64,000 nt of DNA, taken from assembly GCA_052426225.1 (NCBI GenBank), contig JBNJNM010000013.1, positions 1,550,001-1,614,000 of the forward strand, read 5' to 3'. A program made the position numbers and the translations under genes. Shown here piece by piece: positions 29,742-64,000 of the stretch. Below the pieces are notes generated by a model. That model did no database searches and was not told the DNA's origin. It saw nothing but the letters and a program-made list of their open reading frames with translations. The DNA is from Zancudomyces culisetae HAW-14-8 (lineage: Eukaryota > Fungi > Kickxellomycota). Each line of letters opens with the position of its first letter. The stretch's first letter is position 1.

Positions 29742-30473
29742 AAAACGAGCGATTGAAATCCCAACAATCTGCTCCACCAGATCCGCCAGCAGAACAATAA
29801 AAGTCCGCACAGACCGCACCAGTACCAATACCAGTTCAGTCAGCCGCTGCCCGCATAGCCTTGACAGAAAGGTATGAGTCATGAACTGATTCTAGAATGT
29901 TCGAAAACGTTCTAGAATCATCTGATTTTATTCCGCAGTAATGTTTAGAATGTTTCCAGACATTCTAGAACATTACCGAAAATTCACTTTATTTATTAAT
30001 TTTTCATACTTAATAATTTTCACATGTTTAATTTTATTAGCATTCGAGTTAGATTTTTGTATGATTACTAATCTAATTTGAATAGTAATCAAACACGTTT
30101 TTCTTTACCTTTCATTTTTAGCTATTCCGCAGTTTTCATCGTGATTTTGTTCAAAAACCAAGGCTGGAAAAATGTATAAAAAGGGTACAATTTTCCTGTC
30201 TTGGATTCAGTATCTAGTATCTTGTATACATTCATACAATATACATTAATGTTAGGAATGGCCAATTCCTGGAACATAATTTTTAGTTACATTTTGGCCT
30301 GCTAAAAATCTAACCTATTTTATTATTTCATTTCCGGTTTTCTAATATGTCATTCCGACATTGGAATCATGTTTGCAAAATTCACCATGAATTTTCTGAT
30401 ATTATTACTGGGAAAATTTACTAAGCAAAATCAAGAAATTTTCCAATAATTAAATTTAACAAAAATCCTTGAA

Positions 30474-30715
30474 AAAATTGGATAAATCAAATCCATGAAA
30501 AAATTGGAAATACCAAATCCATGATAAAATTGATAAATAAAATCAACGCTAAAATTGATAAATAAAATCAATGATAAAATCGATAAACAAAATCAACGCT
30601 AAAATCGATAAACAAAAACTATGATAAAATCAATAAACAAAATCATTGTTAAAATTGATATACTAAATCAATGTTAAAATTGATAAACCATATCTATGTT
30701 AAAATCAACAAATGA
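30474..30715 (+). repeat. About 10 x 25-bp tandem array inside the A LTR (also about 41476-41715, and about 29225-29520 inverted)
   Basis: Unit approximately TAAAATTGATAAAYAAAATCAATGW with internal TTGAT...ATCAA dyad. Confidence 0.85.
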
Positions 30716-31160
30716 AAATTACAAATTTCACGATAAGTAGATACCTTAAACTAGTTCACTTTTACATAGATAAATTTTATAGCTAATATTTATTGACTTT
30801 AAGTTTTTCTTCACAGTAAAATTCTCTGATGAAAAATTATATAAACCCTTCGAAATTCCGTTGGGATACATCAGAGAAAAATATATATTTATCAACACAT
30901 CAAATATAATATTTTTCTAAATACTTACTTCTTCCTAAATAAATATTAATCAAGCATAACAAATCTCTACGCCAAGTTATAAGCAGCTCATTGTTTATAA
31001 CATAATATTTTTCTCTCTCGACTCCAAGGATCCAGGCAAACTTCATCAGTATCAAGCAAGCTTTTCATAGCTGTCCATCTGCCATACACTTATAAAAAGT
31101 GTTACCATAGTTCTCACTATAGCTTTAAGACTTACTGCAAGTATATTCAAGACTCCAAAC

Positions 31161-32153
31161 ATGGAAGACCAAGAGCAAGTGCCAAACCCAAATGAGGTTA
31201 TTCAAACCTTAATGGGTCAGATCTCCAGGCTTTCCGACGAAGTAGACTCCTTACGCCAAACATCCAGTTTTCAAAGAGCATTTATTCCAGAGCCAAAAGT
31301 TCCAACACCAGAAAAGTTTAGTGGTGGAAGAAAAGACAATGTCAAAAACTTTCTCTCCACAGTCCGAACCGTCTTCAAGTTACAGCCAAGCCGTTTCCCA
31401 ACTGATCACGTTAAGGTCCTGTACATCGGGACGCTCCTCACCGACGGGGCACAAACATGGTTTAGAACGTTGCAGGAAGCACGTCATACCATTCTCTTTC
31501 AGTATAAAAACTTTATTAGTTTATTAGAAAGAACTTACGGCGAACCCAATTCTGTATGGGTTGCGCAGAATAAATTAAAAAATCTGCAGCAGGGTCGTTC
31601 CCGCTGTCTTGCCTACACCACACACTTTAAAAGTGTAGCGCTTGAGACAGAGTATAACGAACCCGCGCTCGTCAAGGCCTTCTACGAAGGATTAAATGAC
31701 GAAATCAAAGACGCTCTCTCAACTCTGGATCACGTACCCACTACGTTTGAAGAGTTCACTTCTCTCTGTATCAGAATTGATAACAGAATCTTTCAGAGAA
31801 GAGCAGAAAGGAACAAGGTTAAACCCTGGATTCCTCCCATGCATTATACATCTTCGGAGATTACCAGAATGGATGTAGATGTAATGGGCACCCGTAGACT
31901 AACCGAACCAGAAAGAGATCACAGAAAACATAATAATCTCTGTTTTTATTGTGGTGGTTCAAACCACACTGTCCAGAATTGCCACAGGAAGAAAAAACAC
32001 CAAGAATCTTTTATGAATCCGAACTCCGTAAATCTGAAGAAGACCCGTTCCCCAAGCAGAGACTCAGGGAAATCCATTATTTCCAAGATCAAGAATCAAA
32101 CTATTATTCAAGCAAAAAACCAGAGAACTCCTCAGAAATCAGAGGGTATCTGA
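31161..32153 (+). CDS. Gag of element A (capsid plus CCHC zinc knuckle)
   Basis: PEKFSGG...KVLYIGTLLTDGAQTW; LCFYCGGSNHTVQNC. Confidence 0.9.
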   Translation: MEDQEQVPNPNEVIQTLMGQISRLSDEVDSLRQTSSFQRAFIPEPKVPTPEKFSGGRKDNVKNFLSTVRTVFKLQPSRFPTDHVKVLYIGTLLTDGAQTWFRTLQEARHTILFQYKNFISLLERTYGEPNSVWVAQNKLKNLQQGRSRCLAYTTHFKSVALETEYNEPALVKAFYEGLNDEIKDALSTLDHVPTTFEEFTSLCIRIDNRIFQRRAERNKVKPWIPPMHYTSSEITRMDVDVMGTRRLTEPERDHRKHNNLCFYCGGSNHTVQNCHRKKKHQESFMNPNSVNLKKTRSPSRDSGKSIISKIKNQTIIQAKNQRTPQKSEGI

Positions 32154-33788
32154 AGGATAATCATGAACCCTCACCATCCATGGAGTTTCAAACTCACTAT
32201 CTTAACAATACCAAGTTTTCTAATAATTTTTTAATTAATATCAAGATCAAGTATAAAAATAAAAAGATACATACCAAGGCTCTGGTAGATACCGGAGCAT
32301 CAGGAAATTTTATAAGCAATAGACTTATAAATAATCACAGAATCATGATCCAAACATTGGATACACCCATAGAAATAATTCTAGCAAACAATAAACCTGC
32401 TAGTCATGGATTAATAACTAAAGCCACAGTACCTCTAGAAATCATGATCAACAAACATATTAGCACGACTACATTCAATGTCGTACCGTCTCTCAGTTAC
32501 CCCGTTATCTTAGGATTGCCATGGTTAAAACAACAACAACCAATTATTGATTGGGTAAAGCTGAAGCTAAACTTCAATCTGCCTATATCAACAGCAATAA
32601 ATAATTTAAAACTTAACCAAATTACCTTGTCGGAGAAATCATTTGATCCATATGATGATTCAGATGATGAGGAATCATTTGAAAACCACTCCGAGAAACT
32701 ACCCATGAAATATCAAGACTACTCAGATGTATTTTCAAAGAAGAATGCAGACACTTTACCAGAGCTTAGACCCTATGATTGTGAAATCCCGCTAAAAGAT
32801 CCAAACGCCAAGATACCGTTCAAGCCGTTATACAACTTGTCAGGTCCAGAACTCAAGACTCTAGATGAGTATATCAAAGACAATCTCAAAAAGGGATTTA
32901 TCAGGAGAAGTCATTCCACAGCAGGTGCTCCGATATTTTTCATAAAGAAAAAGGACGGAGGTTTAAGACCTTGTATCGATTACAGGGACTTAAACGAGCT
33001 AACTGTGAAAGATCGGTATCCACTACCACTGATTTCTGAACTATTAGATCATCTCAATGATGCTAGAATATTTACCAAAATAGATCTGAGAGGTGCATAT
33101 AATTTAGTTCGTATGAAGCCAGGTGAAGAGTGGAAAACCGCCTTTCGTTCCCGATATGGACACTTTGAATACCTAGTAATGCCATTCGGATTAACCAATG
33201 CTCCAGCTGTATTTCAAGCAATGGTGAATGACATATTCAGAGATATGCTAGACATATCTGTAATAGTATATCTTGATGATATACTGGTGTTTTCTGAAAA
33301 CCAAGAATCACACAACATGTCATGAACAGATTCTAGAATGTTCGATAACGTTCTAGAATCATCTGATACTATTCCGCAGTAATGTTTAGAATGTTGGGGA
33401 ACATTCTAGAACATTACCGAAAATTCACATTATTTATTAATTTTTCTTACGTAATAATTTTCACATGTTTAATTTTATTAGCATTCGAGTTTGATTTTTG
33501 TTTGATTACTAATCCAATTTGATTAGTAATCAAACACGTTTTACTTTAACTTGCATTTTTAGCTATTCCGCTGTTTTCATAGTGATTTTGTTCAAAAACC
33601 AAGGCTGGAAAAAAGTAAAAAAGGGTACAATATTCCTGTCTTGGATTCAGTATCTAGTATCTTGTATACATTCATACAATAAACTTTAATAATAATAAAT
33701 ATAACTCTCCTGACACCAGATCTTGACACTATACTAGATCAAAATATTATATTTATTATTTTCTGACACCAGCCTAAGTATTTTAATC

Positions 33789-35009
33789 ATGGAACCGTTT
33801 AGCCCAGAACAAGTTGAATTCCTCAACAAAGCCGCCGTGACCCTGCCAGCAGTTGAAGACGCCCTCCAGCAACTACTAATAAGAGTAGAAAAAGCCGAGT
33901 CTGCCATCAAGGAACACCCTGCCACAGTATCCAAGAAAATTTATGACAAGGTCAAAGCAGACACCACCAAGTCCATCCAGACCATTCTTGACTCCATGAA
34001 AAACCTCCAGTCCGATATCCAGAATTCAGACCAGCTGACCCAAAGCGCCATACAGGCCAACCAGTTGGAAATCCAATCCCTTCAGGACCAGCTCAGTACC
34101 CTCAGGAACGAAGTCATACTTTATATAACTGAAAACCGTGCCACCAAAGTTGCTAGTACTTCTGAACCTAGTATCAAAGTAAGACACCCAGACACATTTT
34201 CAGGAAAACCCTCCGCCTGTTCCAACTTCTTTTCACAGCTTGCTCTCGTCTTTGCCGCTTCACCCGATAAATTCAACACAGACTCAAGTAAAGTCTTGTA
34301 TGCCATCTCCTACCTCTCAGGCACACCATTCAGTTACATGGAACCTTACCTCATGAAAGCAAACCTTCCAGAGTCTGACCGTCCTGCCATCCTCTCCAAC
34401 TACAATCTGTTTAAAGAAACTATCACTCGTGCCTTTGGTGATCCCAACCCTATTGAGAATGCTGATAGGGCAATCCGCCAACTCCGCCAAACCACTTCCG
34501 TTGCCGCATATGCCACCGAGTTTAGACGCCTACAGATGTTAATTGACTGGAACCAACCACCACTTATCTCACAGTTTCTATCCGGTCTCAAGTACAACGT
34601 ATCCCAAGAACTCAACCGTAGAGAACCAATAGAAGACATCGATACCCTGATCTCTACAGCCATCCAGATCGACAACCGCCTCTTCAGCCATCCACAACGT
34701 CGTCAACCTCCAGTTAACCCCACTGCAACTATGCCACCCAAACCCACTGCTTACAACCCGTTTGCTTCACCTGTTTCTGCACCATCTACCACTCCACCAG
34801 CTAATAGTGATGGACCGCAACCAATGGATCTCAGTACCGCTTCATCGACTAGAAGACCACCACTTACTTCTGCTCAAAGAGCATACCGTATCGAAAACAA
34901 TCTCTGTCTCTATTGTGGCGGTAATGACCATTTCAACATCAACTGTCCAAAGAAACGCCACAACATCTCCAGCATTACACCAACACAGGAAAACGACACC
35001 GCCCAGTAG
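33789..35009 (+). CDS. Gag of element B
   Basis: PDTFSGKPS...KVLYAISYLSG; PQPMDL; LCLYCGGNDHFNINC. Confidence 0.93.
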   Translation: MEPFSPEQVEFLNKAAVTLPAVEDALQQLLIRVEKAESAIKEHPATVSKKIYDKVKADTTKSIQTILDSMKNLQSDIQNSDQLTQSAIQANQLEIQSLQDQLSTLRNEVILYITENRATKVASTSEPSIKVRHPDTFSGKPSACSNFFSQLALVFAASPDKFNTDSSKVLYAISYLSGTPFSYMEPYLMKANLPESDRPAILSNYNLFKETITRAFGDPNPIENADRAIRQLRQTTSVAAYATEFRRLQMLIDWNQPPLISQFLSGLKYNVSQELNRREPIEDIDTLISTAIQIDNRLFSHPQRRQPPVNPTATMPPKPTAYNPFASPVSAPSTTPPANSDGPQPMDLSTASSTRRPPLTSAQRAYRIENNLCLYCGGNDHFNINCPKKRHNISSITPTQENDTAQ

Positions 35010-35047
35010 ACAGTAAGGGACACCTATTGGGCAACTTAGCCAGTCCC
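34988..35047 (+). promoter_or_regulatory. Predicted -1 ribosomal frameshift signal (slippery site plus H-type pseudoknot)
   Basis: G_GAA_AAC at 34988-34994, 6-nt spacer, stem GCCCAGTAG/CTATTGGGC, loop GGGAC pairing with GTCCC at 35043-35047. pol is in the -1 frame. Confidence 0.75.
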
Positions 35048-38000
35048 CACGCCACTGTAACCACTCCTGTTTCTGACACCCAATCTCCTGATAAACCAAA
35101 CACCTTGACCATCCCTGTAACCATCTTGTCCAAGCACCACCACATCAAAACCTACGCTATGGTTGACTCTGGTGCTTCGTCCTCGTTCATTGACGCCACC
35201 TTTGCACTAAAAAACAATCTACCATCTATATCTAGAAAAATGACAATCACGCTCGCTGACGGATCAAAGCTTAGATCCAACTCTGCCTCCCAAGTAACAC
35301 TAAAAATCAATGATAACCATCTCGAAAGTATCTATCTGCAACAAATAGACCTTGGATCTTCACCAATCATCCTTGGTCTTTTCTGGCTTCAACAACACAA
35401 TCCTGACATCAACTGGACTGAGAACATAGTCCATCTGCCTTGTACCTTGACTTCTTGTGGGCCCAACCATGTCAACCTAGACATCTCTCTTGTGGGCTCA
35501 AACCAGTTTAAAGAACATCTGAAGGCACCAGACACTGTCTATGCTGGTGCAATTACCGTGAACAATCTTGAATCCCTTGTAGCTCCTGAATCTTGTGAAA
35601 ATCTCTGTCTTGTCTCTGAATCTAATCCTAAAACCCCTGTTACTCCTGTAATCCCTGAAAAGTATAAAATGTTTGAATCTGTCTTCTCTGAATCCCAATC
35701 TGCCAAACTGCCTGAACATCGTCCATATGATCATACCATTCCTTTGCTTCCTGACTCAAAGATACCATATGGCCCATTGTACAACCTCTCCCAATTGGAA
35801 CTAAAGACCCTGTACGACTACATTCAGGAAAACCTAGCCAATGGTTTTATCCAACGCTCTGAATCCCCGGCTGGGGCTCCCGTCCTATTTGTAAAAAAGA
35901 AAGATGGTAGTCTCCGGTTGTGCGTCGACTATAGAGCCCTGAATAAGATCACTGTCCCCAACCGTGCAGCCTTGCCACTCATCTCTGAAACCTTGGATCG
36001 GCTTGGCAAAGCCAAGATATTCACCAAGCTGGATATGAAATCCGCATACCACATGATCAGGATCTCGCCTGGTGAAGAATGGAAGACCGCGTTTCGTACA
36101 CGCTACGGCCACTTCGAGTATAAGGTCATGCCGTTTGGCCTTATGAATGCTCCAGCCACGTTCCAGTCCTTTGTTAACGATCTCTTCCGTGAATACATTG
36201 ATCAATTCCTTGTTGTGTACATCGATGATCTGTTAATCTACTCAGATGATATCGATAAGCACTATGACCACGTCTGCCTTGTCTTGAAGAAGCTTCAGGA
36301 ACACAATCTCACCCTCAAGCTAGAGAAATGTGAGTTTGATGTACAATCAGTACAGTTCCTCGGTTTTGTAATTGGCCCCAACGGAATCTCTATGGATCCA
36401 TCTAAAGTATCCAGCGTCACCGAATGGAAGACACCAACTTGTGTCCGTGACGTTCAGGTATTCCTTGGCCTTACAAACTTCTACCGCCGTTTTATTCTGA
36501 ACTACTCCAAGATATCTCTGCCGCTCACCGCCTTGTTGAAAAAAGGTGTCCAATTCCAGTGGACACCCAAAGCTGAAGAAGCTTTCGCCTTGCTAAAAGA
36601 AACCATGATCAGTAACCCAGTCTTAGCTCACTACAATCCTGACCAGCCTTGTATCATCGAAACCGATGCATCAGATTTTGCATTAGGTGCCATTTGCAGC
36701 CAGTATGACAACGAGGGACAACTCCACCCTGTTGCATACTACTCCCGGAAACTCCTGCCTGCTGAAGTGAATTATCAAATCTATGATAAGGAACTGTTAG
36801 CAATTATCGACGCTTTCGCTCACTGGCGTCACTACCTTGAATTTTCTGTACACCCAACCGTTGTTATGACCGACCATAAAAACTTGGAATACTTCTCCAC
36901 TACCAGAAATCTTAGTCGCCGCCAAGTCAGATGGTCAGAATACCTCAGTAACTTCAACTTTGTCATCAAGTACCGCCCTGGAAAACAGAACACTGCCGCC
37001 GATGCTCTTTCTCGGAAAGACCAACCTTGGAAGGGGGGTGACTCCCGTACTGACCAAAACAAAATAACTTTGCTGCCTCCTGAAATCTTCTTGAAGTCCA
37101 TGACTAGTACACCTGTTGAACCTTTGTCATCCACGCTCATGAACAACATCAAGTCACTACAACCCAAAGACACGTACTTTAGACCCATTTACACTGACTT
37201 ATCCAAGAAACCTGATTCCAATGAAAAGTTCGCTCTTGTTGACAATCTTCTGCACTATGATGGACTAATCTGTATCCCCTCAGACGACAACATCAAAAGA
37301 ACAATTCTGATTGAATGCCATGATTCCCCTGCTGCCGGCCACTTTGGAAATGCAAAGACGTACGAACTTGTATCTCGCAACTTTTACTGGCCAACCATGA
37401 GAAAATATATCAAAGACTACATCTCTGGTTGCGATACCTGTCAACGCAACAAATCCTCTCGCCATAAACCATATGGCTACCTCGCTCCACTTCCCGTTCC
37501 TGATTCACCTTGGTCGTCTGTTTCTGTCGACTTCATCACTCAGCTACCTCCATCCAATAACTTTACTGCAATCTGTGTATTTGTGGATCGCCTTACCAAG
37601 ATGGCGCATTTTGTTCCCACAACCAATGAAATTGATGCTGAAGGTACTGCAGATCTGTTTATCCAACATGTCTTCTGCAAACATGGACTCCCTAAAGACA
37701 TCGTATCTGATAGAGGTGTGACCTTCAATTCATCATTCATGCGTACTCTAATGAAATCACTGAATATTGAACAGAAAATGTCCACCGCATTCCATCCTCA
37801 GACAGATGGACAAACTGAACGCGTAAACTCAGTATTGGAACAGTATCTCAGGTGCTACATTGATTACCAACAAACTGATTGGTCAAAGTGGTTACCAATT
37901 GCTGAATTCGCCTACAACAACACATCTCATGCTTCTACTAAAACCACACCTTTCTACGCCAACTATGGCTTCCATCCACGCTTCTCAGTCATAATCCCTC

Positions 38001-38605
38001 GTACTCAAGTTTTAAATCCTGCCTCCTCTGATAGATCCAAACGACTATCTGATATCCACCAAGAACTGAAATTTAACATCTCCCTTGCCCTTGAAGACCA
38101 TGAGAAATACTACAACCGAAAAGTATCATCACAACCTGACTTCAACATTGGTGATCTTGTCTATCTCTCAACTAAAAACATCAGGACTCAAAGACCAAGC
38201 AAGAAGCTTGACTATCGGAAACTTGGTCCATTCAAAGTATTGGAAAAGATTGGACAAAGATCATACAAACTTCAGCTACCACACACAATGAAGATTCACC
38301 CAGTATTCCACGTCAATCTCCTTGAACCTTGTAAACCAGATCTGATCCCAGACAGACCATCAAAACCGCTTCCACCTGTGATCATTGACGGTCAAGAAGA
38401 ATATGAAGTTGAGAAAATCCTAGACAGTAAAATATTTGGTAGAACTGTCAAATACCTGGTACACTGGAAAGGATACCCAGACACTGAACGTACCTGGCAA
38501 ACATATTCTGACTTAGCAAATGCAAAATATCTTGTCACTGAATTCCATCGTCACCATCCTGAAAAACCAAAGCCACCACAAATGCTTCACGGAGCTCAGC
38601 CTTAA
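35027..38605 (+). CDS. Pol of element B (PR-RT-RH-IN-chromodomain), uninterrupted; probably expressed as a Gag-Pol fusion
   Basis: MVDSGAS, YIDD, ETDASD, HHCC (CHD...GH...CDTC), DDE core and chromodomain YEVEKILD...YLVHWKGY. Confidence 0.95.
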   Translation: MGNLASPHATVTTPVSDTQSPDKPNTLTIPVTILSKHHHIKTYAMVDSGASSSFIDATFALKNNLPSISRKMTITLADGSKLRSNSASQVTLKINDNHLESIYLQQIDLGSSPIILGLFWLQQHNPDINWTENIVHLPCTLTSCGPNHVNLDISLVGSNQFKEHLKAPDTVYAGAITVNNLESLVAPESCENLCLVSESNPKTPVTPVIPEKYKMFESVFSESQSAKLPEHRPYDHTIPLLPDSKIPYGPLYNLSQLELKTLYDYIQENLANGFIQRSESPAGAPVLFVKKKDGSLRLCVDYRALNKITVPNRAALPLISETLDRLGKAKIFTKLDMKSAYHMIRISPGEEWKTAFRTRYGHFEYKVMPFGLMNAPATFQSFVNDLFREYIDQFLVVYIDDLLIYSDDIDKHYDHVCLVLKKLQEHNLTLKLEKCEFDVQSVQFLGFVIGPNGISMDPSKVSSVTEWKTPTCVRDVQVFLGLTNFYRRFILNYSKISLPLTALLKKGVQFQWTPKAEEAFALLKETMISNPVLAHYNPDQPCIIETDASDFALGAICSQYDNEGQLHPVAYYSRKLLPAEVNYQIYDKELLAIIDAFAHWRHYLEFSVHPTVVMTDHKNLEYFSTTRNLSRRQVRWSEYLSNFNFVIKYRPGKQNTAADALSRKDQPWKGGDSRTDQNKITLLPPEIFLKSMTSTPVEPLSSTLMNNIKSLQPKDTYFRPIYTDLSKKPDSNEKFALVDNLLHYDGLICIPSDDNIKRTILIECHDSPAAGHFGNAKTYELVSRNFYWPTMRKYIKDYISGCDTCQRNKSSRHKPYGYLAPLPVPDSPWSSVSVDFITQLPPSNNFTAICVFVDRLTKMAHFVPTTNEIDAEGTADLFIQHVFCKHGLPKDIVSDRGVTFNSSFMRTLMKSLNIEQKMSTAFHPQTDGQTERVNSVLEQYLRCYIDYQQTDWSKWLPIAEFAYNNTSHASTKTTPFYANYGFHPRFSVIIPRTQVLNPASSDRSKRLSDIHQELKFNISLALEDHEKYYNRKVSSQPDFNIGDLVYLSTKNIRTQRPSKKLDYRKLGPFKVLEKIGQRSYKLQLPHTMKIHPVFHVNLLEPCKPDLIPDRPSKPLPPVIIDGQEEYEVEKILDSKIFGRTVKYLVHWKGYPDTERTWQTYSDLANAKYLVTEFHRHHPEKPKPPQMLHGAQP

Positions 38606-41600
38606 GAGGGGAGGTCGTGTCATGAACTGATTCTAGAATGTTCGATAACGTTCTAGAATCATCTGATACTATTCCGCAGTAATGTTTAGAATGTTGGGGA
38701 ACATTCTAGAACATTACCGAAAATTCACATTATTTATTAATTTTTCTTACGTAATAATTTTCACATGTTTAATTTTATTAGCATTCGAGTTTGATTTTTG
38801 TTTGATTACTAATCAAATTGGATTAGTAATCAAACACGTTTTACTTTAACTTGCATTTTTAGCTATTCCGCAGTTTTCATAGTGATTTTGTTCAAAAACC
38901 AAGGCTGGAAAAAAGTAAAAAAGGGTACAATATTCCTGTCTTGGATTCAGTATCTAGTATCTTGTATACATTCATACAATAAACTTTAATAATAATAAAT
39001 ATAACTCTCCTGACACCAGATCTTGACACAACAATCATGTAAAAGAAGTCCTAGAAAGACTAAGAACTCACGGTCTCTATGCTAAACTAGAGAAATGCCA
39101 ATTTGACCAAACAAGTGTAGAATTCTTGGGCTACATAATTTCAGATACAGGTATCTCTATGAGCCCAGAAAAAGTTCAAACTATTCTTAGCTGGCAAACA
39201 CCAACCCATGTTAAGGGTGTAATGAGTTTCTTAGGATTTGCTAACTTTTACAGAAAATTTATCAAAGACTATTCCAAGATAGCCAGACCGCTCACAAATC
39301 TAACTAAGAAAGACATTCCATTTAATTGGACCCCAGAATGCCAGGATGCATTCGAATTCCTCAAGAAAACTGTTACTTCAGCACCAATTCTCGCTCACCC
39401 AGATCCAAGTTTACCCTTCCACCTTGAAACTGATGCTTCAGATTATGCCATAGGTGCAGTCTTAAACCAACCAGTGTCCAAGACAGATCCAACTCTCCAC
39501 CCAGTCGCCTTCTATTCTCGCAAACTACTAGACGCCGAAATTAATTATGACATTCATGACAAAGAATTATTGGCTATAGTAAACGCGTTTAAACACTGGT
39601 GACACTACTTATGTGGAGCAATCCACCCAATCAACGTATTCTCTGATCACAGAAACTTAACATTTTTTAGAACAAAGAGAATATTGAAGCAAAGACACGC
39701 CAGATGGGCAAATACTTTGTCTGAATTTGACTTCAAGTTATGTTACAAACCAGGTGCACTTAATCCAGTAGCTGATGCATTGAGTCGGAGGACCGACTTA
39801 TTACCTGAAACGGGGGGTGAATACACAAACCCACAAAAATACGAAGCCACCATCCTCCCAGCTTCCAAATGGATTAATGCTGCTAAAACTCAAACACCTC
39901 AGGTTCAACTAATTACATCGGATAAGAAGAAACTAGAAATCCTTCAGTCTCGTCATGATGCCTTATCCGCCGGACATTTAGGTCAACAGAAAACTTTTGT
40001 CTAATCGCCAAGGATTACTATTGGAAAGGAATGAGACAATACATCAAAGATTATATCAAAGGATGCGATATTTGCCAAAGAAATAAAATTCACAGACATA
40101 AGCCATATGGATTGTTAAACCCACTCGAAATCCCAGAAAAGCCGTGGTCCAAAATCTCTATGGATTACATAGTAAAATTACCAACTTCAAATGGTTATGA
40201 TTCTATTCTAGTAATAGTTTGTCGCTTCACAAAGCAAGCACATTTTATACCATGTAACGAAACCATTGATGCAGCAGGAACTGCAAAGTTATTCATTAAT
40301 AATATTTTCAAGTTACATGGACTGCCAGTAGACATCACATCTGATAGAGGACCCCAATTTAGATCAAAGTTTTGGAAAGAAATCATGAATTTATTAAAAG
40401 TCAAAGTAAATCTATCTTCTGCATATCACCCACAGTCAAATGGACAAACAGAAAGAGTCAACCAAACTCTTGAACAATACCTCAGAAATTACTCGAACTA
40501 CAATCAAGATAACTGGAGTACCTTACTACCATTCGCAGAGTTCGCTTACAACAACGCAGTAAGCTCAAGTACCAAGATGTCACCGTTTTATGCAAACTAT
40601 GGATACAACCCCAAGGCTGATTTTTTATATACTAAAGAAAACACATCTAGTAATCCAGCAGTAACCTCGTATCTTAAAGTCATTCAAGAATCATGTGAAG
40701 AAATTAAGTCAACACTTAATCAAGCTCAAGACAACTCAGTAAAACAATCAAAACGTAAAAGAATAAATATCAAGTACAAAGTAAACGATTTAGTATGGTT
40801 AGATCGTAAAAACATAAAGTCTATGAGACCATCTCATAAATTAGACAATCAAAGAATAGGTCCGTTCCATATCACTGAACAGATAAACAAAGTGACTTAC
40901 AGATTAAAACTACCAAATGAAATGAGAATACATGATGTATTCCACGTATCACTCCTTGAGCCATATCATACACCGATAATCAAAGGACAAATCAAACCAA
41001 GACCTGAACCCATCATCTTAGATAATACTGAAGAATGGGAAGTTGAAGAAATTCTAGATGACAAGAAAACAAATAATAAAATTTACTATCTTGTAAAATG
41101 GAAAGGATACACAGACTGTGAAAACACCTGGGAGCCAATTGAAAATCTTGCAAACTGTCAAAAACTCTTAAAACAGTATAATCAGAAATCCAAGAAACCC
41201 TAAATCTGAATGCAATCGATCTCGCGGAGCTTGATCATAAAAATGGGGGTGATGTTAGGAATGGCCAATTCCTGGAACATAATTTTTAGTTACATTTTGG
41301 CCTACTAAAAATCTAACCTATTTTATTATTTCATTTCCGGTTTTCTAATATGTCATTCCGACATTGGAATCATGTTGCAAAATTCACCATGAATTTTCTG
41401 ATATTATTACTGGGAAAATTTACTAAGCAAAATCAAGAAATTTTCCAATAATTAAATTTAACAAAAATCCTTGAAAAAATTGGATAAATCAAATCTATGA
41501 AAAAATTGGATATACCAAATCCATGATTAAATTGATAAATAAAATCAACGCTAAAATTGATAAACAAAAACCATGATAAAATTGATAAACAAAAACCATG

Positions 41601-42591
41601 TTAAAATCGATAAACAAAATCAACGCTAAAATCGATAAACAAAAACCATGATAAAATCAATAAACAAAATCATTGTTAAAATTGATAAACCATATCTATG
41701 TTAAAATCAACAAATGAAAATTACAAATTTCACGATAAGTAGATACCTTAAACTAGTTCACTTTTACATAGACAAATTTTATAGCTAATATTTATTGACT
41801 TTAAGTTTTTCTTCACAGTAAAATTCTCTGATGAAAAATTATATAAACCCTTCGAAATTCCGTTGGGATACATCAGAGAAAAAAATATATTTATCAACAC
41901 ATCAAATATAATATTTTTCTAAATACTTACTTCTTCCTAAATAAATATTAATCAAGCATAACAAATCTCTACGCCAAGTTATAAGCAGCTCATTGTTTAT
42001 AACAATTAATATTAATAAATATAACTCTCCTGACTCCAGATCTTGTCAGCATAACGGCAATCGCAGCAACTTCCGTGGTTTTGTAAACCAATGCCGTCTA
42101 CTGTTGTTCACCCATCCAGACCACTACCCGTCCGCCACAAACAAGGTTGGTATTGTTATGTCCCTCCTCACAGGGAATTGTTAGATACCAATATTGTACA
42201 CAATATTATTGATATTAACTAATGAACACACAGAATGTTTTATATAAGTTAGTATTAATTATACTAGTTTAAACAAACAGTAATAGATAATTTATTGGTG
42301 TATAATACCATTATTATTGTTAAACGAGATTGACAAACTTAATTGTTTATGAAAAGGATTTGTATCCCATTTTATACTATTAAGTTTGTTATAAATATTA
42401 ATATAAAACTTAAACTATTAATAAAACTAATAATAATATACTAATAAGCGAACATCATTAATTTACACATTATTAATGAAGAAACATATAATATTGATCA
42501 TGTGTATCAACATTATTGTTTTAAACTAATAATTATATAATAATCAAATTAAATAAACATATAATTAAATAAAATTAATGTTACATATGTA

Positions 42592-44185
42592 CAGTGAGTT
42601 TCAATATTGTCTCAAAATAATGATTTTAATTTTCAAAGTGTAAAATCTCGCTCAATAATATCAAAAATTTTATGTTGTTTATATATATAATTCTCAAATG
42701 TTATATTATAATTTTATATAAACTGTATTTTTATTGGTTAAAAATTCATATGAAATTATAAATTTAAAAATTTTTAAAAATGAGTCAATTATGAGAATTT
42801 TTCAAAAAAAATTTTTAAAATTCTTTCCACCTTCCTTTAGACTTGATAACTGCCTAAACTCTTTTGAGCATACTATCTATAAGACCAAGTATTGTTTCCA
42901 CTGAAATTAAATTCCATTCCGTTTCTATTCGCTCCCATAATTCGATCATCCCGGACGGAGGTTTACTGTATCTATTTAGGCGTCTTTTGATGATTGCCCA
43001 TATAGTTTCAATTGGGTCTAAGTCTGGAGATTGTGGCGGCCAGTCCAATGTATTATATTCCTGGTTTTCAAGCCAGCTGGTAACTAACATTGAGGTATGT
43101 TTAGGATCATTGTCATGTTGAAATATTATTGACTTGGGATCCAAGTTGTAGTACTTTTTAGTATTGCTAAGCTCGGCTTTTAAAATGTTTAAATAATCTT
43201 CCTTGTTTAACATTCCTTCTATTCGGCACATGTAGCCAGTTCCAGATGCTGTGATGCATCCCCAAATCATTAATGATCCTCCACCGTGTTTTACGGTCTG
43301 GTTAATATTGTGCGGCTGTAGACTCACACCATCACGAACCCAAGTTCATTCATTTCCATCATATCCAAATCGGTTGATTTTAGTTTCGTCGGACCAAATT
43401 ACTCGTCTCCAATCATCAGTAGTCCAGTGGCGATGAGATTTTGCGAATCTCAACCTTTGTACAATATTTTTAAGGCTCAGTTTCGGTTTGGATGCCTTAT
43501 TTTTTGCAACGGCTTTTAGATCATTAAAAGCCCTATATATTGTAGACTTACTAGCACTTACAACATTATCCATTTCTAACTTCTTTTGTATCGAAGTAGC
43601 AGATCGATACTCTCCATTTAATATCATCCTAGTACATATTCGCTTGCTTTGGGGTGAAAGCTTCGCTGGACGACCTCGTTTATTAGCCGGTAAATTGATA
43701 TTCATTGCGCTTTTATTCTGTATATTGTTGCTTTACTAACTCATTATCTATAATGATTTGGTCAATGCATCTGCCTTCAAGTAAGGCGTTTTTTATATAT
43801 AGTTTACGTTGTTCAGATATCATTTTTTAAATAATTATTATTTTAATTAGTTAACAATTATATATATTATTATATGTATGAGTTTAAAAAAATTTAAGTT
43901 TGAATTCATAAAGTTATGATAGTTTAAATTTTTTTTTTGAAAAATTCCCAAAATTGTCTCATTTTTAAAATTTTTTCAATTTATAATTTCATAATGAATT
44001 TTTTTCCAATTAATTAACATTTTATATAAAATTAACATATAACATTTGTCCATTTTATAATATAAATAACATATAACATTTGTCCATTTTATAATATAAA
44101 TAACATAATTTCTGGATATTATTGAGCGAGATATTTCACTTTGAAAATTAATTTCAATATTTTGAAACATTTTTGAAACTCTCTG
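42592..44185 (-). mobile_element. Tc1-family DNA transposon with long (about 230-265 bp) TIRs
   Basis: TA duplications at 42590-42591 and 44186-44187; CAGWG termini; TIRs about 42592-42822 and 43920-44185. Confidence 0.92.
42815..43823 (-). pseudogene. DD34E Tc1 transposase, frameshifted
   Basis: GRPAKL, WSDETK, KHGGGSLMIWGC and FQHD-(34 aa)-E ending SPDLDPIE. Broken into several ORFs. Confidence 0.9.
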
Positions 44186-44463
44186 TATTTACCCAAATGA
44201 ATAACAAATATATATATTACTGTGTCTGCAAGTGAATAATTTTTAATCACATATATAATATAAAAAATATTGCACATGAGCATATTTATTTGTATTATTT
44301 ATCTATCTATATATATATACTATTATGATATATATAAAATATATTGTAAAATTTTTATCCAAACTATAGAATATATTTATCGCAAATATTTTCGATAATG
44401 TTGACATTAATAAATATAAATTGACTATTCCATATATTGTGTTTAAATATTTATTAATATATA

Positions 44464-46277: not shown

Positions 46278-49200
46278 TTATTCAGATTCGCGTTCGTTTT
46301 CGATCTTGCTGAGCCAAAATTCTTGTATTTTTACGTGTGCGTTAACATCCTGTTCACGCTCCCAACTTCGCTCTTCAGGTCCATATTCTTCGTAATCAAT
46401 GTAATAATATGTGGTACCATCAATTTCTTGTGTATCCAAAATTTTATTTACCACATATTCTATTTCATTATTGATGATTACAGGTGATGGGGGTCTGATG
46501 TCTGGTCGTATCACTAATTCTGATGTGTGATATTTTTCTAATATTGATACATGAAATACTGGATGTATCTTCATGTTTGGTGGTAATTGTAGCTTAAATG
46601 TGACGTCGTTTATTATTCCTATAACCTTGTATGGACCAATCTTTTTGTTATCCTATTTGTCGGAGGGTCTGACAGTTTGTGTATATTTTCGTATTAGCCA
46701 TACCTTATCACCTATTTTGAACTTTGGATGTTGTTTTCGCTTCCTATCTGCAAACTTTATTCCAGTTTAAATAGCATTTTGTAACACTTTTTTGATGTCA
46801 TGATGATGTTTTTTAAGTTCTATAACACGGTTTTCAGCACTTGGAATTATCTCAATAGTTGGTATTTGTGAAATAATAAAGTATCAAAACCTTATAATGT
46901 TTTAAATAGTGACATCTTTATTGCACTGTGATATGCATTATTGTATGAATATTCAGCTAATGGAAGTAATTTGCACCAGTTATCTTGCATGTATTCACTG
47001 TAACACCTCAAATATTGCTCCAATGTTTGATTAGTACGCTCAGTTTGACCATTAGTTTCAGGGTGATAAGCACTAGAAAGTTTTATTTTTACGTTTAAAA
47101 GTTCGTAAAAACGCTACCAAAACTTGCTTATAAACTGAGATCCTCTATCAGAAATGATCTCATCAGGTGTACCATGTAGTTTAAAAACATTTTTAATGTA
47201 TGCAGTAACTGTTTCGGGTGAAGTCGGCAACTTTTTAAATGGTATGAAATGTGCCATTTTAGTATATCTATCAACAGTAACCATTATTGTTGTATACCCA
47301 TTTGACTTTGGTAAATCTGTAATGAAGTCCATAGTTATAGATTTCCATGGTCCAGATGCTATAAGAAACGGTTGTAGCAATCCATACTGTTTATGTCTGT
47401 TAGATTTATTTTTTTGACATACATCACATGTATTAATGTATTCTTTCACATATTTCATTTTTTGTTTTATAAAATAGTTTCGATCCAAATTTTTTATTGT
47501 TTATGTATCCCAAAATGTCCAGCTGCACCTGAATCATGAACTTCTTGTAGTAATTGTATTCTTAATACATCAGGTACATATATTTTTTCATTTATATATA
47601 TTAATCCATTACGTTTTATAATGATATCAGATTCTTTTAGTTGATGTTTTAAATCATTAATATCGATATTATTCTGCTCAATATATGTTTTAATGTTGTT
47701 TAAAAGTTCACTTTGTGGTATTATGATTGCATTAATAAAGTGTTTTCCCTCAATAATATTGTTGTTATCACTTTTGAATCGTCATAATTAGTATGTCTTG
47801 AAAGTGCATCAGGTTTACCACTTTGTTTTCCTGGTCTGTAGGTGATATCAAAGTCATATTCATTTAGTAATAATGACTATCTGGCGGGTCTTCTGTTGAA
47901 ATTTTATGTTTTTAAATGACTCAAAATTCTTATGATCAGTATATATTATAAATTTTTGTGATGCTTCTTGCAGGTAATGACGCCATTCTTTAATTGCATT
48001 GATAATTGCTAACAGTTCTTTGTCATAAATATCATAATTTATTTCAGCTTTTTCCAGCTTATGAGAGTAATATGCACATGGAGCGAGCATCCCATCATCA
48101 TTATATTGTGATAAAATAGCTCCAATTGCATAATCTGAAGCATCCGTTTCAACTATAAACTGTTTATCTGGGTTAGGATATTGTAATATTGGTGTAGATG
48201 TCAACATATTTTTTATTGTATCAAATGCATTTTGCTCTTTAGATGACCATTCCCACTTTTATCCTTTTTTAACAGCTCTGTAAGTGGTCTATTAACCTTG
48301 GAAAACCCTTCAATAAACTTCCTGTAATAATTTGCGAAGCCCATAAATACTTGAATATCTTTTGGTTTTGTTGGTGTATTCCACTCATGCACACATTTAG
48401 TCTTTTCTGGATCAGATGGTATGCCTTTATCACTAATAATATGGCCTAAAAATGTCACTTTTTTGACATCAAACTCGCATTTTTCGAGTTTACAATACAG
48501 TTTATGCTTCCTTAATTTGCTTAAAACATTTTTAACATGCTCCGTATGTTGATGTATATCCGGTGAAAAGATTAGTATATCATCTAGGTAAGATATTGCG
48601 TAAACATCCAATATATCTCTTAACACATCATTAATAAAATGTTGAAAAGTTGCAGGTGCATTAGTCAATCCAAATGGCATTACTTGATACTCGTAATGTC
48701 CATATCTGCATCCTAAAGCGGTTTTAGGTTCATCGCCTTTTTTTATTCTGACCAAGTTATATGCACTACGAAGATCCAATTTTGTAAATATTCGTGCATC
48801 CTTTAATCTATCAAACACCTCATCAATTCTAGGCAACGGATACATGTTTTTAATAGAGTTTTCATTCAGTTTTCTGTAATCTACACACAGTCTTAGCTCA
48901 CCAGATTTCTTTTATACAAACATTATAGGCGCGCCATAAGGTGATTTTGAATGCCTTATAAATTTGTTTGCAAGATTCTTGTCGATGTATGACTTTAATT
49001 CAATGAGTTCAGTTTGAGATAGTGGGTATATTGAACCCCAAAATGGTTTAGAATCTTCTTTTAAATCGATTCTACAGTCATATTCACGATGGTTTGGCAA
49101 TGTTTCAGCCATTTTTTCATCAAAGACGTCAGTAAATTCAATATACTTTGTAGGTATAACAGTAGGAGTAGGAGTAGTATCAGTATTGTTATTATTTAAA

Positions 49201-51692: not shown

Positions 51693-52256
51693 TATAATTA
51701 ACGTTTATAGCTATGTTTAGACAAATTGAGCAATTTTTATGAAATTAATTATTCGTAATAAATTTTAGAATTTTAACTTTATGTTAGATACCAATATTAT
51801 ACACAATAGTAATGGTATTAACAAACTATCACACAGTTAGTTTTTGAAAGCTATTAATTATATGTTTATGAAAACACACAGTAATAATAAATTATAACTA
51901 ATATAACTTTATTAGTAATAACGAGATTGTTAAACTTAGTTTTTCATCAAAGGAAAATGTATACCCTTTTATACAACTAAGTAATAATAAAACGTAATAT
52001 AAAACTAAAACTAATATTATGATAAATATTTATAAATATAAACTTATTTCATTAATATACATAATATTAATGATGATACATTTAATATTGATCATGGTAT
52101 CAATATTAATGTTTTAAACATATTATTAAATATTAATATAATCTTATAAACTATAATTCAATAATATTAATATATACATATAATATCATTACTAATATTA
52201 CATACCATATCATATTGTAATATATAATATGTTACTATACATGTGTATTTATAACA

Positions 52257-58883: not shown

Positions 58884-61800
58884 TGTCGCATAAAATGCGA
58901 TATGAAACTGGAATTTCCAAAATTGGATATTAGACCAATAAAATATTTTTTGATTTTTACAAGGAAATTGGACTCTTTTTTCCAATGATTTTACTTGGTG
59001 TTTTTAATTTGCTAAATTTGGATAGGAAATGTGATTTTATTATTATTTAGGAGGATCATAATTACAAAAAATATTCAATATATTTTTATCATATTCGAAT
59101 ACAAGAAGTGGTTCTAAATTAGAGTTTTAACATTGCTCGAACACTGAATGTAGAGCTTATATAACTTATAAATTTAAAAAACTTCAAGAATTATAATATA
59201 CTAAAGAGTTTTAGTTGATAGTGGCGATCACGGTGGGACCGAGAAATAATAATTGGATTCAAAATATGGTTGATATCAGTTAGTTTAATTCGCTAGAAGA
59301 TGATCCCGAGGAGTGGATAGACATGTATCGGCTACATGCAAAGATGAAGAATTGGCAGGAGGCAGATTGGATTGAATTTATGGTTTTCATTTGGGAGAAA
59401 GGGAAAGGATATGGTTCATTAGGAAGATTGCCAAATTTACAACTGGGTTTCAGTTAAATCTTCTTTCTTTGAAAAGTTCGTTCGTATAATTAATACCCAT
59501 CAATCTTAGAACACTTGAAAAACATAAACCAAAATAAATTTGGTTCTGTGGTTGAGTTTAGTACGCATTGAAAGTAGCCTTAAATAATTGCGGAATAAAT
59601 GATGATACTCAAAGAGTTAATTGGCTTATTAGTGCTATAAACCATTCATACAATGTTAAAATACTAGATGCAGGTGTAGGTAATTGGGACGAGATAATTA
59701 AAATCCTAAATTCAGGATTGGAACAACCTACCATTTTAGAAAAACCAGTAGTAGAACCAACAGATTCAGCAATAAAAAATGCCAGACTATCAGGCCCAGG
59801 GAAAAGCATAAGAGTGATGACGGATGAACAAGAAGGGTATAAAGTAATGATAAACAAGATGGAGGAGTGGGGTGTTAACTTGTTAACAAAAGTCGAAGAA
59901 GTGGTGGATAAAAACATTGATACTGCGATTTCAAAAAAGTATGGCCACTCGACATATAAACCTCCATACTGCGGTAACTGTCAAAAAACAGGTCATAAAA
60001 GATACCAATGTCTCGAGTTGAATAATTCCCGACAGTTGCAATCCGAAACTAAGAAAGAAATAAACACTATTGAGCTATTATCTGAAGAGGATGATGATGA
60101 CAAAGATTTATATTTAGTTCAGCGTACTAACAATTAGGAAAATTTAATAATCCTTATTTAAAAATAAATAACAGCGATAAGAATGTTAAGAATTTGACTT
60201 ATTAATTACTAAAGATATACAATATTATGAAAATGATTAAATACAAAAAAATACAAAAGATTTTAAAAATACAAAAAAATTAAATAATTCAAGTAATATA
60301 AAATAAAAAACTAATGAAATGGAAATGGTGGTGGAAGTTCTTGACGATGAATTATCTCAGAAATCTAAAGTATCTGAAATTGGAGTACAGAAGAAGGCAA
60401 AATACGTCACTAAGATTTCAGAATATACTACACCATTCAACATGGTCGAAGAGCTGAACCAATTCTATCCTAAAATTAGTTTCACACAATTGTTAGAGGC
60501 ATCCCCGACGCTTACTGCAGAGTTAAACACGTTGTGTAAAAAGGCCAAGAAGTTAGACGTTAACGAAATCCGTTTCCTTCCACAAAAAATAAGTAACTGT
60601 AAAGTCATAGTTTCAGATTTCAATAAAAAATACTGGGCAGTTGTCGACACTGGAGCAGCCTGTTCCGTAACTACAACAACGTTAGCCGAACAATGGAGAA
60701 TTGAACCAGATGAATGGCAAAGGCAGGTTATAGTGACAGCCGACGGTAGTAGGCATTCAACATGCGGTATCCTTAACAGGGTACCGCAGAAGATAAGTAA
60801 CTACACACTAGAAGCTGAGCTAGTAATAATGAACCGAAAGGACGATATGTTGATTTTAGGTACAGACTGGCTTTATAGGCACCATGGTATTGTCGACCCT
60901 CGTAGTAGTGAATTAAAGATCCAGGCTCAATCAAATTTGCTAATTATTACAATGCAAACAATCTCGGAAAAGCCACAGCAAAATACTTATGATTCGGAAA
61001 TTTATTTAATGGAAAAGGGGATGATAAAGAAAAATCAACAGTTGAAAAATATGATGATGAAAGGTTAACAAAATTCAAAGAAGAATTTAAAGATATTTTT
61101 GTATATGATATCAATGAGCTTACCCAAACCGATCTAGCAGAACATCGGATTGAATTGACTGACGAAATACCAATTAAGCAACGTCCTTACCGAATTCCCC
61201 ACCACATGCAGTTGAAAGTTAGAAATGAACTTGAGATAATGGAAAGAAAAGGGGTTATTTCACCATGTTACTCTGAATAGTGTTCCCCGGTAGTTACGGT
61301 TTATAAAAAAAACGGCAAACTCCGTGTTTGCGCCGATTACAGAAAATTGAATCAGGTAACAAAGAAGGACGCCTATCCGCTTTCGACAATAGACGATATT
61401 TTTATGACGCTAGCAGGAAGTCGGATTTTTACAAGCCTAGACGCATTGAGCGGCTTTTGGCAGATTCGTATGGCCAACAAAGACAGACTGAAAAGAGCAT
61501 TCGCAATCCCAGGTAGCGGCAGCTACTGTTATAATGTCATGCCTTTCGGCTTGACGAATTCACCTGCCTCTTTTTAAATGTTGATGGAAGAAGATCTAGG
61601 TCCGGTGCTATGGAAAACAGCAGTTTTCATAGACGATATTATAATATTTTCCAAATCACTTTCTCAACTTATATTAGATTTAAGAAAAGTGTTTGAATTA
61701 TTATGGAATTATAAAATACAACTACATAACGAAAAATGTTTGTTAGGGATGAAGAAATTAGGATATTTGGGTCATATGGTTTATATGGATGGAATAGGAA

Positions 61801-64000
61801 GGACGGACGAGAAAATTAAGGCAATTATGAATGCGAAATACCCGACAAACGTTAAGGAGTTACAATCCTTCCTCGGACTAACAGGCTATTATCGAAAGTA
61901 TGTTGACGGATATGCATTGTTAGCGGCTCCTCTAGTTAAGTTGTTGAAGAAAGAATCGGTATGGAAGTGGACTGAACATCACGTAAACGCAGTAAATGAA
62001 CTTAAAAACAAACTTTGCAACGCCCCAATTCTTTCCCACCCCAACTGGGATCTCGAGTTTATATTAACAACTGATGCTTCCGAAGATGGTATTGGTGCTA
62101 TTTTATCCCAACTTACTGAACAGGGAGAAAAACCGATATCCTACGCAAGTAAAACAACAAATAAACATGAAAAAAATTACTCCATTACGCTCTTAGAGGC
62201 TTTAGCAGTGGTCTGGGGTATAAAAAAATAAAAACATTACCTATGGGGTAAGCACTTTACCGTACGTACCGATCATAATTCATTGTTGAATTTGTTTGAT
62301 GGGAAAGAAATCACTGGTCGTGTCGCGAGGTGGGCCATGATTTTACGCAATTATAATTATACAGTGGTACACTGCAAGGGTAAATCAAACCCAGCCGACA
62401 TGTTATCAAGATTAGAAGCACCAAATCCTGTTGAAGAGGTAATAGATATAATTAGTATTGAAGAAATATCTAGTGAAGATATTATAGGGTACTTACAGAA
62501 TAACCTCTTTTCTCCAGATGCAAACGCTAAATATAAAAAGAAGATCATTACAAAGTCTAAGAAATACAAAGTTATTGATAGTGCTTTATTTAAATTATGC
62601 AAGGGAATATATAAAGAAGTTTTATTAGATAACAACGCACGTAAAGTTGTAGAAGAAATACATCAGGAAACTCATGAGGGTATCGAGAATACCTGGCGAC
62701 GAGTGAGCAATAAGTATACGGGGAAGCGTCTGTTTGAATTAATAAAAACGGTAGTAAGGGAATGTAGTACCTGCCAAATGTATCAAGGAGGACGGGTAAG
62801 ACGAAACGAAATTCACCCTATACACACGCATAAACCGTTCGGAATCTTTGGGCTCGATGCGATTGGTCCCATTAGCCCAATTACTGCTTCGGGTAACAGA
62901 TACATCCTAACTGGAGTTGACTATTACACCTAATGGCCCGTTGCGGAAGCCGTAGATAATATAAAAACAGACACAATTATAAATTTTATAGTTACTAATA
63001 CTATTCAGCACTTCGGAACACCAGACCAAATCATAACAGATAGGGGTCCAGGTTTTGTAAGTGAAGCTGCCGATAAAGTATACAAATTTCTAGAGATTAA
63101 ACATACCCCTACTACCCCTTACAGACCGCAAAGTAACGGTCAGGTAGAGAGGTTAAATCAGACTTTAAAAAATGTACTAGCTAGGCAGTGTAAAAAAGAC
63201 AAGTTAAATTGGGACACCTACCTCTGGAAATCACTTCTTGCAATTCGTAATATGCGGAATCGAAGCACTGGATTTAGTCCAGCTGAATTACTATATGGTG
63301 TAACGCTCACTACACCTTCCATTTGGTCACCCCCCGCAGAAATTAGCGATTTGCAAATTACAATTCAAGAAAGGATCGACGCAATTCGTACTGAATTACC
63401 TGAACTTCGTGAGATCGGTCGAATTCGAAATCTAAAAGCAAAACAAAATATGTAAGAACGCTATGATAAACATGTAGTAATTTCGAATTTTGAAGTAAAT
63501 GATATGGTCATGAAATTGATTGAACAAGTAACGGAAAAATTTCAAGAGATTTGGGAAGGCCCATACCGTATAGAACAAAAACTAAGATCAGGTACTTACC
63601 TCATTTCTGACTCCGAAGGAAACCGCGACTTGGTAAATGGAGACATGCTAAAACGTTTTTATCACAGTAAAAACATGATTCCCGAAGTAACAACCACGTT
63701 AAGGTCAAAATTGAAAAGATTCAAAAACAGAGTAAGTCCAATTTGGGTGCCGGGATCTGTCGCATAAAATTGCGATATGAAACTAGAATTTCCAAAATTG
63801 GATTTTGGACCAATAGAATTTATTTTGTTTTTAACTAGGAAATTGGACTCTTTTTTCCAAGAATTTTACTTGGTTTTTTTAATGAGCTAAATTTGGTTAG
63901 GAAAAATGATTTTTATAATTAGGAGGATCAGGATTACAAAAAAAATTCAATACATTTTTACTATATACGAATACAAGAAGAGGTTCTAAAATAGAGTTAT
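58884..64000 (+). mobile_element. Degenerate non-chromodomain Ty3/Gypsy element F (3' LTR runs off the window)
   Basis: LTRs about 58884-59220 and from 63758 (TGTCGCATAAAAT). Gag knuckle CGNCQKTGHKRYQC, VDTGA, FIDD, TTDAS, TPYRPQSNGQVER. Many stops. Confidence 0.9.
59222..59238 (+). promoter_or_regulatory. tRNA primer-binding site of element F (tRNA-Arg-like 3' end)
   Basis: TGGCGATCACGGTGGGA lies just after the 5' LTR. Its complement ends ...CCCACCGTGATCG-CCA. Confidence 0.7.

Follow-up and report, generated by a model that had tools for sequence, protein, structure and literature searches.

The genome of Zancudomyces culisetae, a mosquito-gut fungus of the Harpellales, is available as a PacBio-HiFi/hifiasm assembly at 48x coverage (PMC12611240). 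We analysed a stretch of 64,000 nucleotides (hereafter the window; C13:1550001-1614000) of this 27.09-Mb, 25-contig assembly. Its first 28 kb are gene-rich and devoid of repeats, and the segment from 29 to 64 kb consists of nested Ty3/gypsy elements, called A, B, E and F, and of one Tc1/mariner-type element, with GC contents of 0.17-0.46. An earlier note on this DNA had proposed that the repeats diverge mainly by A<->T transversions and that a mutagenic process other than repeat-induced point mutation (RIP), aimed at repeats, is eroding the cluster. Our analysis of the repeat families across the genome indicates that a real process does turn A:T pairs into T:A pairs at an unusually high rate.

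Repeats of the window and their differences

The repeats and their parts are as follows (LTR, long terminal repeat; TIR, terminal inverted repeat; ORF, open reading frame).

29003..29741, minus strand: inverted copy of the A-family LTR, with inverted repeats I1-I7, an 86% match to the A LTR and 25-bp tandem repeats
29877..30250, plus strand: B-family 3' LTR of an older, 5'-truncated copy, ~7% different from the intact B LTR
30250..30938, plus strand: 5' LTR of the A-family gypsy element, a direct repeat with 41252-41940 at 96% identity
33318..39029, plus strand: full-length family-B Ty3/gypsy element of chromovirus type, nested in A, with LTRs at 33318-33729 and 38618-39029, a gag ORF at 33789-35009 and a pol ORF at 35027-38605
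33379..33417, with a second copy at 38679-38717, no strand: hairpin 1 of the B LTR, loop CCCC/GGGG
33499..33536, with a second copy at 38799-38836, no strand: hairpin 2 of the B LTR, loop CAATTT/AAATTG
41252..41940, plus strand: 3' LTR of the A-family element
42179..42502, no strand: LTR copy of element E, 79-83% identical to its partner at 51782-52096, 81% A+T
42590..44187, plus strand: decayed Tc1/mariner-type DNA transposon with TIRs of ~230 bp, from a family of at least 40 copies
51782..52096, no strand: second LTR copy of element E, paired with 42179..42502
58892..59126, plus strand: 5' LTR of element F, with its partner at 63767-63998
63767..63998, plus strand: 3' LTR of element F, reaching the window edge

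We aligned each repeat pair of the window pairwise, with gaps, and counted A<->T changes over all substitutions. They make up 27/36 of the differences between the Tc1 TIRs, 15/30 for the F LTR pair, 32/59 for the E LTR pair, 15/26 between the truncated B LTR and the B 5' LTR, and 14/34, 12/33, 13/28 and 10/18 for the arms of the A-family LTRs. The two LTRs of the intact B element differ by four substitutions, of which two are the A<->T changes already reported at 33328/38628 and 33572/38872 and the remaining two belong to a single hairpin-loop inversion. When all window pairs are pooled, ~53% of the substitutions are A<->T and ~31% are transitions. The A<->T excess between repeat copies is thus real, and these counts are close to those made earlier by hand. 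The alignment of the Tc1 TIR starts also holds, and the three stop codons that had been listed as products of such changes can be read in the sequence (minus-strand TAG at 46653-46655 and 47114-47116, and TAA at 62931-62933).

Several structural details had to be revised. The B LTR, described as ~373 nt long, has 412 nt. The sequence at 29877-30250 had been taken for a solo LTR with mutated termini, and it is the 3' LTR of an older B copy truncated at its 5' side. Upstream of it, from position 29857 on, ~20 nt resemble the region of the B polypurine tract, and the LTR breaks off at the start of the A-family LTR, 39 nt short of its full extent. It is a truncated B copy and not a solo LTR generated by recombination. 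As the A LTR interrupts the truncated LTR at 30250, the supposedly mutated 3' terminus of the B sequence is a junction between the two families, whereas the T>A change at its first base is real. Lastly, the starts of the E LTRs, which had been read as four independent exchanges between A and T, are better explained by slippage in a TA stretch.

The B LTR hairpins 1 and 2 have perfect stems, and their loops are present in both orientations across the family. In 3/23 B elements, loop orientation differs between the two LTRs of the same element, and this is the case for hairpin 2 in the B element of the window. The stems stay perfect while the loop turns into its own reverse complement, and family B contains both forms. 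The loop variation is therefore a recurrent flip-flop inversion of the type found in chloroplast DNA, in which small hairpin-loop inversions occur.

The A-family gag and reverse transcriptase ORFs lie at 31161-33325. The A-family LTR harbours an array of 25-bp tandem repeats (30348-30722 and 41350-41699 in the window) whose copy number varies among genomic copies, with LTR lengths of 636-764 bp. An Rfam scan across the window gave no match. In the gene-rich part, the closest relatives on record of the TRM1 gene belong to Smittium species, and at 55-56% identity they are too distant for comparing neutral sites.

Neutral spectrum of the Tc1-like family

The Tc1-like family is the most informative for neutral decay. 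It is a cut-and-paste DNA transposon, with no reverse-transcription step in its decay, and relatives of the transposase encoded by one copy (L061) carry HTH_Tnp_Tc3_2 and DDE_3 domains. We collected 34 non-redundant copies from 11 contigs, with a mean divergence of 8.8% and a star-like phylogeny. Changes were polarised by the majority state of each column and counted only if flanked by five unchanged columns on each side (n=670). The three codon positions of the transposase ORF carry similar numbers of changes (148/144/149, p=0.95), which indicates that the decay is neutral. Two copies of the family, L083 (C6:1448454-1450063) and L084 (C2:16264-17873), are identical to each other; with a length of only 22,891 bp, C2 could be a redundant contig, or an alternative one, for the C6 region.

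The per-site rates of the six classes of changes in the Tc1-like family are as follows.

G:C>A:T: 0.0134
A:T>T:A: 0.0125
G:C>T:A: 0.0052
A:T>G:C: 0.0027
A:T>C:G: 0.0021
G:C>C:G: 0.0021

A:T>T:A changes represent 44-48% of the isolated substitutions at an A+T content of 67%, where equal rates would predict 22%. Thus, the excess persists after normalisation for AT content. With a stricter filter of eight clean columns (n=522), the spectrum is unchanged and the proportion is 44%. Bootstrapping gave a 95% confidence interval of 3.4-6.6 for the ratio of A>T to A>G changes, a ratio that amounts to 2.8 for singletons alone and 4.0 for unique column-events. Transitions account for ~33% of the events, and the transition/transversion ratio is ~0.5 (0.40-0.64). 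Each of the three classes leading to A or T has a higher rate than any of the three leading to G or C, by a factor of 2.5-6 per site. From these rates, the GC content is expected to settle at an equilibrium of 0.20-0.25, and the oldest debris of the window (44-46 kb and 52-58 kb) is near this value, with a GC content of 0.17-0.22, i.e. 78-83% A+T.

The changes are strand-symmetric per base (A>T 0.25 vs T>A 0.28; C>T 0.36 vs G>A 0.31), and the strand asymmetry expected of APOBEC- or ADAR-like editing was sought in the Tc1-like copies and not found. Across the 34 copies, the balance between A<->T and all other changes is not heterogeneous (p=0.58 and 0.25 in chi-square tests), and we detected no link between the A<->T share and copy divergence, no RIP-type bursts and no hypermutated subset. 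The A<->T share of the window copy is 0.52, compared with a mean of ~0.50 in the 33 copies elsewhere, which argues against a process aimed at this cluster. A CpA>TpA signal similar to that of RIP is lacking in the family, since C>T rates in NCA contexts (0.003-0.013) do not exceed those in other contexts. Neither RIP nor deamination of 5-methylcytosine accounts for the A:T>T:A rate, as the earlier note had argued. The CpG effect is modest, C>T in GCG and TCG being two to three times as frequent as in most other contexts when all copies are considered. Two loci of the genome code for C5-methyltransferases (C11:857741-858940 and C10:823421-824413), which together with the rise in GCG and TCG hints at some CpG methylation.

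No dinucleotide target was found for the A<->T changes of the Tc1-like copies, and among trinucleotides the rate is highest in AAA and in GAG, the latter on a small number of events. In contrast, the A:T>T:A rate climbs with the local A+T content, from 0.005 to 0.019. It also rises with the length of A/T runs, from 0.0092 at isolated positions to 0.0148-0.0202 in runs of 3-4 and 0.0270 inside runs of at least 5, whereas A:T>G:C is flat across run lengths (0.001-0.004). This is the run-length dependence of the Caenorhabditis elegans type. A<->T changes dominate the LTRs and TIRs because these are 72-84% A+T and because the A:T>T:A rate rises ~3-fold with A+T content and run length. The description of the repeats as diverging mainly by A<->T changes therefore stands for AT-rich LTRs and TIRs and fails for whole B elements, in which G:C>A:T is the largest class. 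Compensated indels at the boundaries between A-runs and T-runs were considered as a source of isolated mismatches and rejected, as there is no enrichment at boundaries. Selection on the Tc1 ORF as a cause of the fewer A<->T changes in the interior was likewise discarded, given the even codon positions.

Spectrum and persistence of family B

We compared 23 full-length copies of family B, which diverge by 1.4% on average. The window copy has open gag and pol frames, and at least 21 full-length copies match it at 97-100% identity. In this young gypsy family the A:T>T:A excess is weaker, at twice the A:T>G:C rate. Private changes (singletons) occur at per-site rates of 0.0171 for A:T>T:A, 0.0271 for G:C>A:T and 0.0121 for the remaining A/T-installing class, as opposed to 0.0082 for A:T>G:C and 0.0043 and 0.0062 for the other G/C-installing classes. 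As in the Tc1-like family, the three A/T-installing classes all exceed the three others. A<->T changes represent 27% of the changes over whole elements and 50% inside LTRs, and the effect of immediate neighbours is not monotonic. Private changes are enriched at third codon positions (p=1e-4), and they are therefore not fully neutral.

The LTR pairs of the 23 elements differ at 0-7 of 373 sites, and 12/23 pairs are identical. Altogether they show 34 differing sites, of which 13 are A<->T and six are transitions, and ~8/34 lie in loop inversions. Near-identical copies and LTR pairs argue against fast erosion of repeats. Two pairs of B copies, L034 (C11:5078504-5084178) with L035 (C7:357900-363574) and L031 with L052, are identical or differ by 0.14%. 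The latter two are both on C21, 10 kb apart on opposite strands. Such pairs point to transposition in the very recent past or to a segmental or inverted duplication.

A proposed background bias and its alternatives

The pattern is that of an unusual AT-directed mutation spectrum and corresponds to neither RIP nor an editing system. We favour, by no more than a cautious preference, the view that the A<->T excess is the component exchanging A:T for T:A of a general, AT-directed, strand-symmetric and clock-like background mutation bias of Z. culisetae nuclear DNA. The spectrum observed in transposon copies is neutral, symmetric, uniform among copies and context-dependent; under this view, the same bias would act on all DNA and not on repeats alone. 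Most simply, the A<->T transversions belong to the pressure that has also raised old debris to 78-83% A+T. In mechanistic terms, an A:T>T:A change would have to arise from a T.T or A.A mispair, or from an adenine lesion at which A is inserted during bypass. During replication or lesion bypass, polymerases might favour A or T when inserting a base across from a mispair or an unrepaired lesion, and the joint rise of G:C>T:A and G:C>A:T with A:T>T:A fits such a general insertion preference.

This preference is perhaps tied to a thin repertoire of translesion polymerases and repair enzymes. We surveyed repair genes with Pfam on the six-frame translated genome, an approach whose sensitivity is lowered by exon splitting. 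The sole match to a Y-family (IMS) polymerase in the genome is weak (C6:429372-429854, 32.7 bits) and contains one in-frame TAA, which may correspond to an intron; within the same limits of sensitivity, the little-finger domain IMS_C has no match anywhere. The set of translesion polymerases may thus be reduced. The survey identified three loci for HhH-GPD glycosylases, one of them Ntg-like, one OGG1, with an adjoining OGG_N domain, and one further at C8:1468961-1469443 that was assigned to neither type, as well as two MT-A70 loci. Neither an AAG-type glycosylase nor a MutY C-terminal domain was found in this limited, splitting-prone survey, and it revealed no unusual adenine glycosylase. As a cause of the bias, the thin repertoire is suggestive only, and we regard it as a lead rather than as evidence.

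Similar features are known from other systems. In mutation-accumulation lines of C. elegans, A:T>T:A and G:C>T:A rise in A/T runs, ~7-fold in mononucleotide runs (Rajaei et al. 2021, PMC8415377). Z. culisetae resembles them in that longer runs raise A:T>T:A, from 0.009 to 0.027, and leave A:T>G:C flat. However, the worm spectrum was measured genome-wide in real time, whereas ours is deduced from transposon copies only; the gradient is 3-fold here instead of ~7-fold, and the baseline outside runs is already ~3.7 times the A:T>G:C rate. In non-coding chloroplast DNA, A/T substitutions depend on the neighbouring A+T content (Morton; PMC9339276). The A/T substitutions described here are also strongly dependent on A+T context, and small hairpin loops flip in both systems, but ours is the nuclear genome of a fungus, and the immediate-neighbour effect in family B lacks a monotonic trend. 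Nuclear pseudogenes of grasshoppers are devoid of transition bias (Keller et al. 2007, PMC1790724). Neutral decay in Z. culisetae similarly proceeds without the 'universal' transition excess; unlike in grasshoppers, the spectrum is not flat, as the single class A:T>T:A is raised to the level of G:C>A:T. Finally, transitions are the commonest classes of the Neurospora crassa spectrum, and its H3K9me3 domains have a 10x higher rate and a lower transition/transversion ratio (bioRxiv 10.1101/2022.03.13.484164). Repeats become very AT-rich debris in both fungi. Nevertheless, RIP in Neurospora causes C:G>T:A changes at CpA in bursts, whereas we found no CpA signal and no bursts, and the A:T>T:A excess seen here is absent from Neurospora heterochromatin.

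Some observations weigh against a bias acting on all DNA. As a substitute for a comparison of neutral sites within Z. culisetae, we used a syntenic 15.5-kb single-copy locus of two Smittium culicis assemblies, GCA_001970855.1 (L093) and GCA_001970865.1 (L094). At 74% A+T, transitions make up 52% of their intergenic differences and A<->T changes 28%, as against the 51% A<->T that the rates of the Z. culisetae transposons predict for this locus (chi-square p=4e-22). This contrast is noisy, as it comes from another species and from assemblies that are 8-20% apart. The two assemblies differ by ~8% in genes and by up to 20% in intergenic regions, which is far beyond the usual for strains of the same species. 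Furthermore, single-copy non-ORF DNA of the window has a GC content of 0.27-0.34, above the equilibrium derived from transposons; an ordinary explanation would be that the intergenic DNA of a compact genome is constrained and perhaps under biased gene conversion. At the 4-fold degenerate sites of family B, where numbers are small, private changes comprise nine A<->T vs four A>G, and changes shared within active lineages five vs 11. Errors of reverse transcription in active lineages would be the ordinary explanation of that contrast. Interrupted A-runs (A3-4 X A3-4) in the single-copy half of the window, with T:G:C at 71:29:28, are close to composition and hence uninformative. Searches with the transposase and pol proteins found no transposon relatives in Smittium, matching only metagenome or Logan contigs.

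The Smittium, GC and 4-fold hints keep alive a regime restricted to repeats or heterochromatin, which would mostly be a passive chromatin effect of the Neurospora kind and to which we assign a minor but substantial share of the probability. In the purely passive form, which we consider possible though rather unlikely, the spectrum would be confined to, or stronger in, chromatin that is repeat-rich, silenced, late-replicating or non-recombining, through more lesion bypass, poorer access of repair or lack of GC-biased gene conversion, without repeats being targeted. The transition-dominated intergenic DNA of S. culicis, the higher A+T content of transposon debris than of single-copy non-coding DNA and the different private and shared B changes would all fit, and a dependence of rate and spectrum on chromatin is documented in N. 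crassa (bioRxiv 10.1101/2022.03.13.484164). However, 34 copies located at different sites have a uniform A<->T share that is unrelated to divergence, A:T>T:A is not raised in N. crassa heterochromatin and is even lower after trinucleotide correction, and the S. culicis comparison suffers from the noise described above. That the excess is limited to repeats or to silenced chromatin, as the work of a dedicated, slow, adenine-directed defence distinct from RIP, acting by lesion, modification or error-prone patch synthesis, seems improbable to us. We give even less credence to an active defence induced by repeats, in which the adenines of duplicated DNA would be damaged or modified, as a non-RIP analogue of RIP. 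The excess is indeed present in each repeat family examined, but hypermutated copies, strand bias and a target motif are all missing, and accumulation is slow, as attested by B LTR pairs that are identical in 12/23 cases and otherwise differ at up to 7/373 sites. Family B survives in at least 21 full-length copies that are nearly identical, and the gag and pol frames of the one in the window are open. Moreover, G:C>A:T and G:C>T:A are raised too, which fits a general bias towards A/T better than an adenine-specific enzyme, and the limited Pfam survey gave no candidate adenine glycosylase of an unusual type.

An artefact of A+T content, misaligned A/T-run indels, multi-base events or consensus errors is very unlikely and already largely refuted. 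A model of equal exchangeability does give ~45% A<->T at 78% A+T, hairpin-loop inversions and TA slippage contribute clustered complementary swaps, and hand alignments of the E LTRs at ~80% identity are unreliable. Nevertheless, the per-site excess holds with eight clean flanking columns, with singletons and with unique column-events, run boundaries are not enriched, and the equal-exchangeability null presupposes an A>T rate 3.5x that of A>G and so restates the bias. With a 48x HiFi consensus, base errors amounting to 1-9% are not plausible. That reverse transcriptase or RNA polymerase created the A<->T differences by errors in the course of retrotransposition would be in line with the A<->T-rich variants shared among B LTRs (21 A:T>T:A vs 6 A:T>G:C). 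However, the strongest signal comes from a DNA transposon family without an RNA step, and LTR pairs, which are identical at insertion, differ mostly by transversions (13 A<->T and six transitions out of 34). The Tc1-like data already refute such errors as the main cause, and we consider this the least credible of all the explanations.

With a transition/transversion ratio of ~0.5 and A:T>T:A as frequent per site as G:C>A:T, Z. culisetae is an outlier when set against N. crassa. The finding bears on how AT-rich genomes and AT-rich repeat debris originate without RIP. It also bears on the choice of substitution models for Harpellales and on the dating of insertions, as AT-rich LTRs decay faster than interiors, and a clock with a single rate therefore misleads estimates of LTR age in this lineage. 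If the bias were restricted to repeats after all, it would represent a new kind of repeat-linked mutagenesis. If it tracks the thin complement of Y-family polymerases and glycosylases, it would provide a testable link between the loss of repair genes in a gut symbiont and a change of its mutation spectrum.

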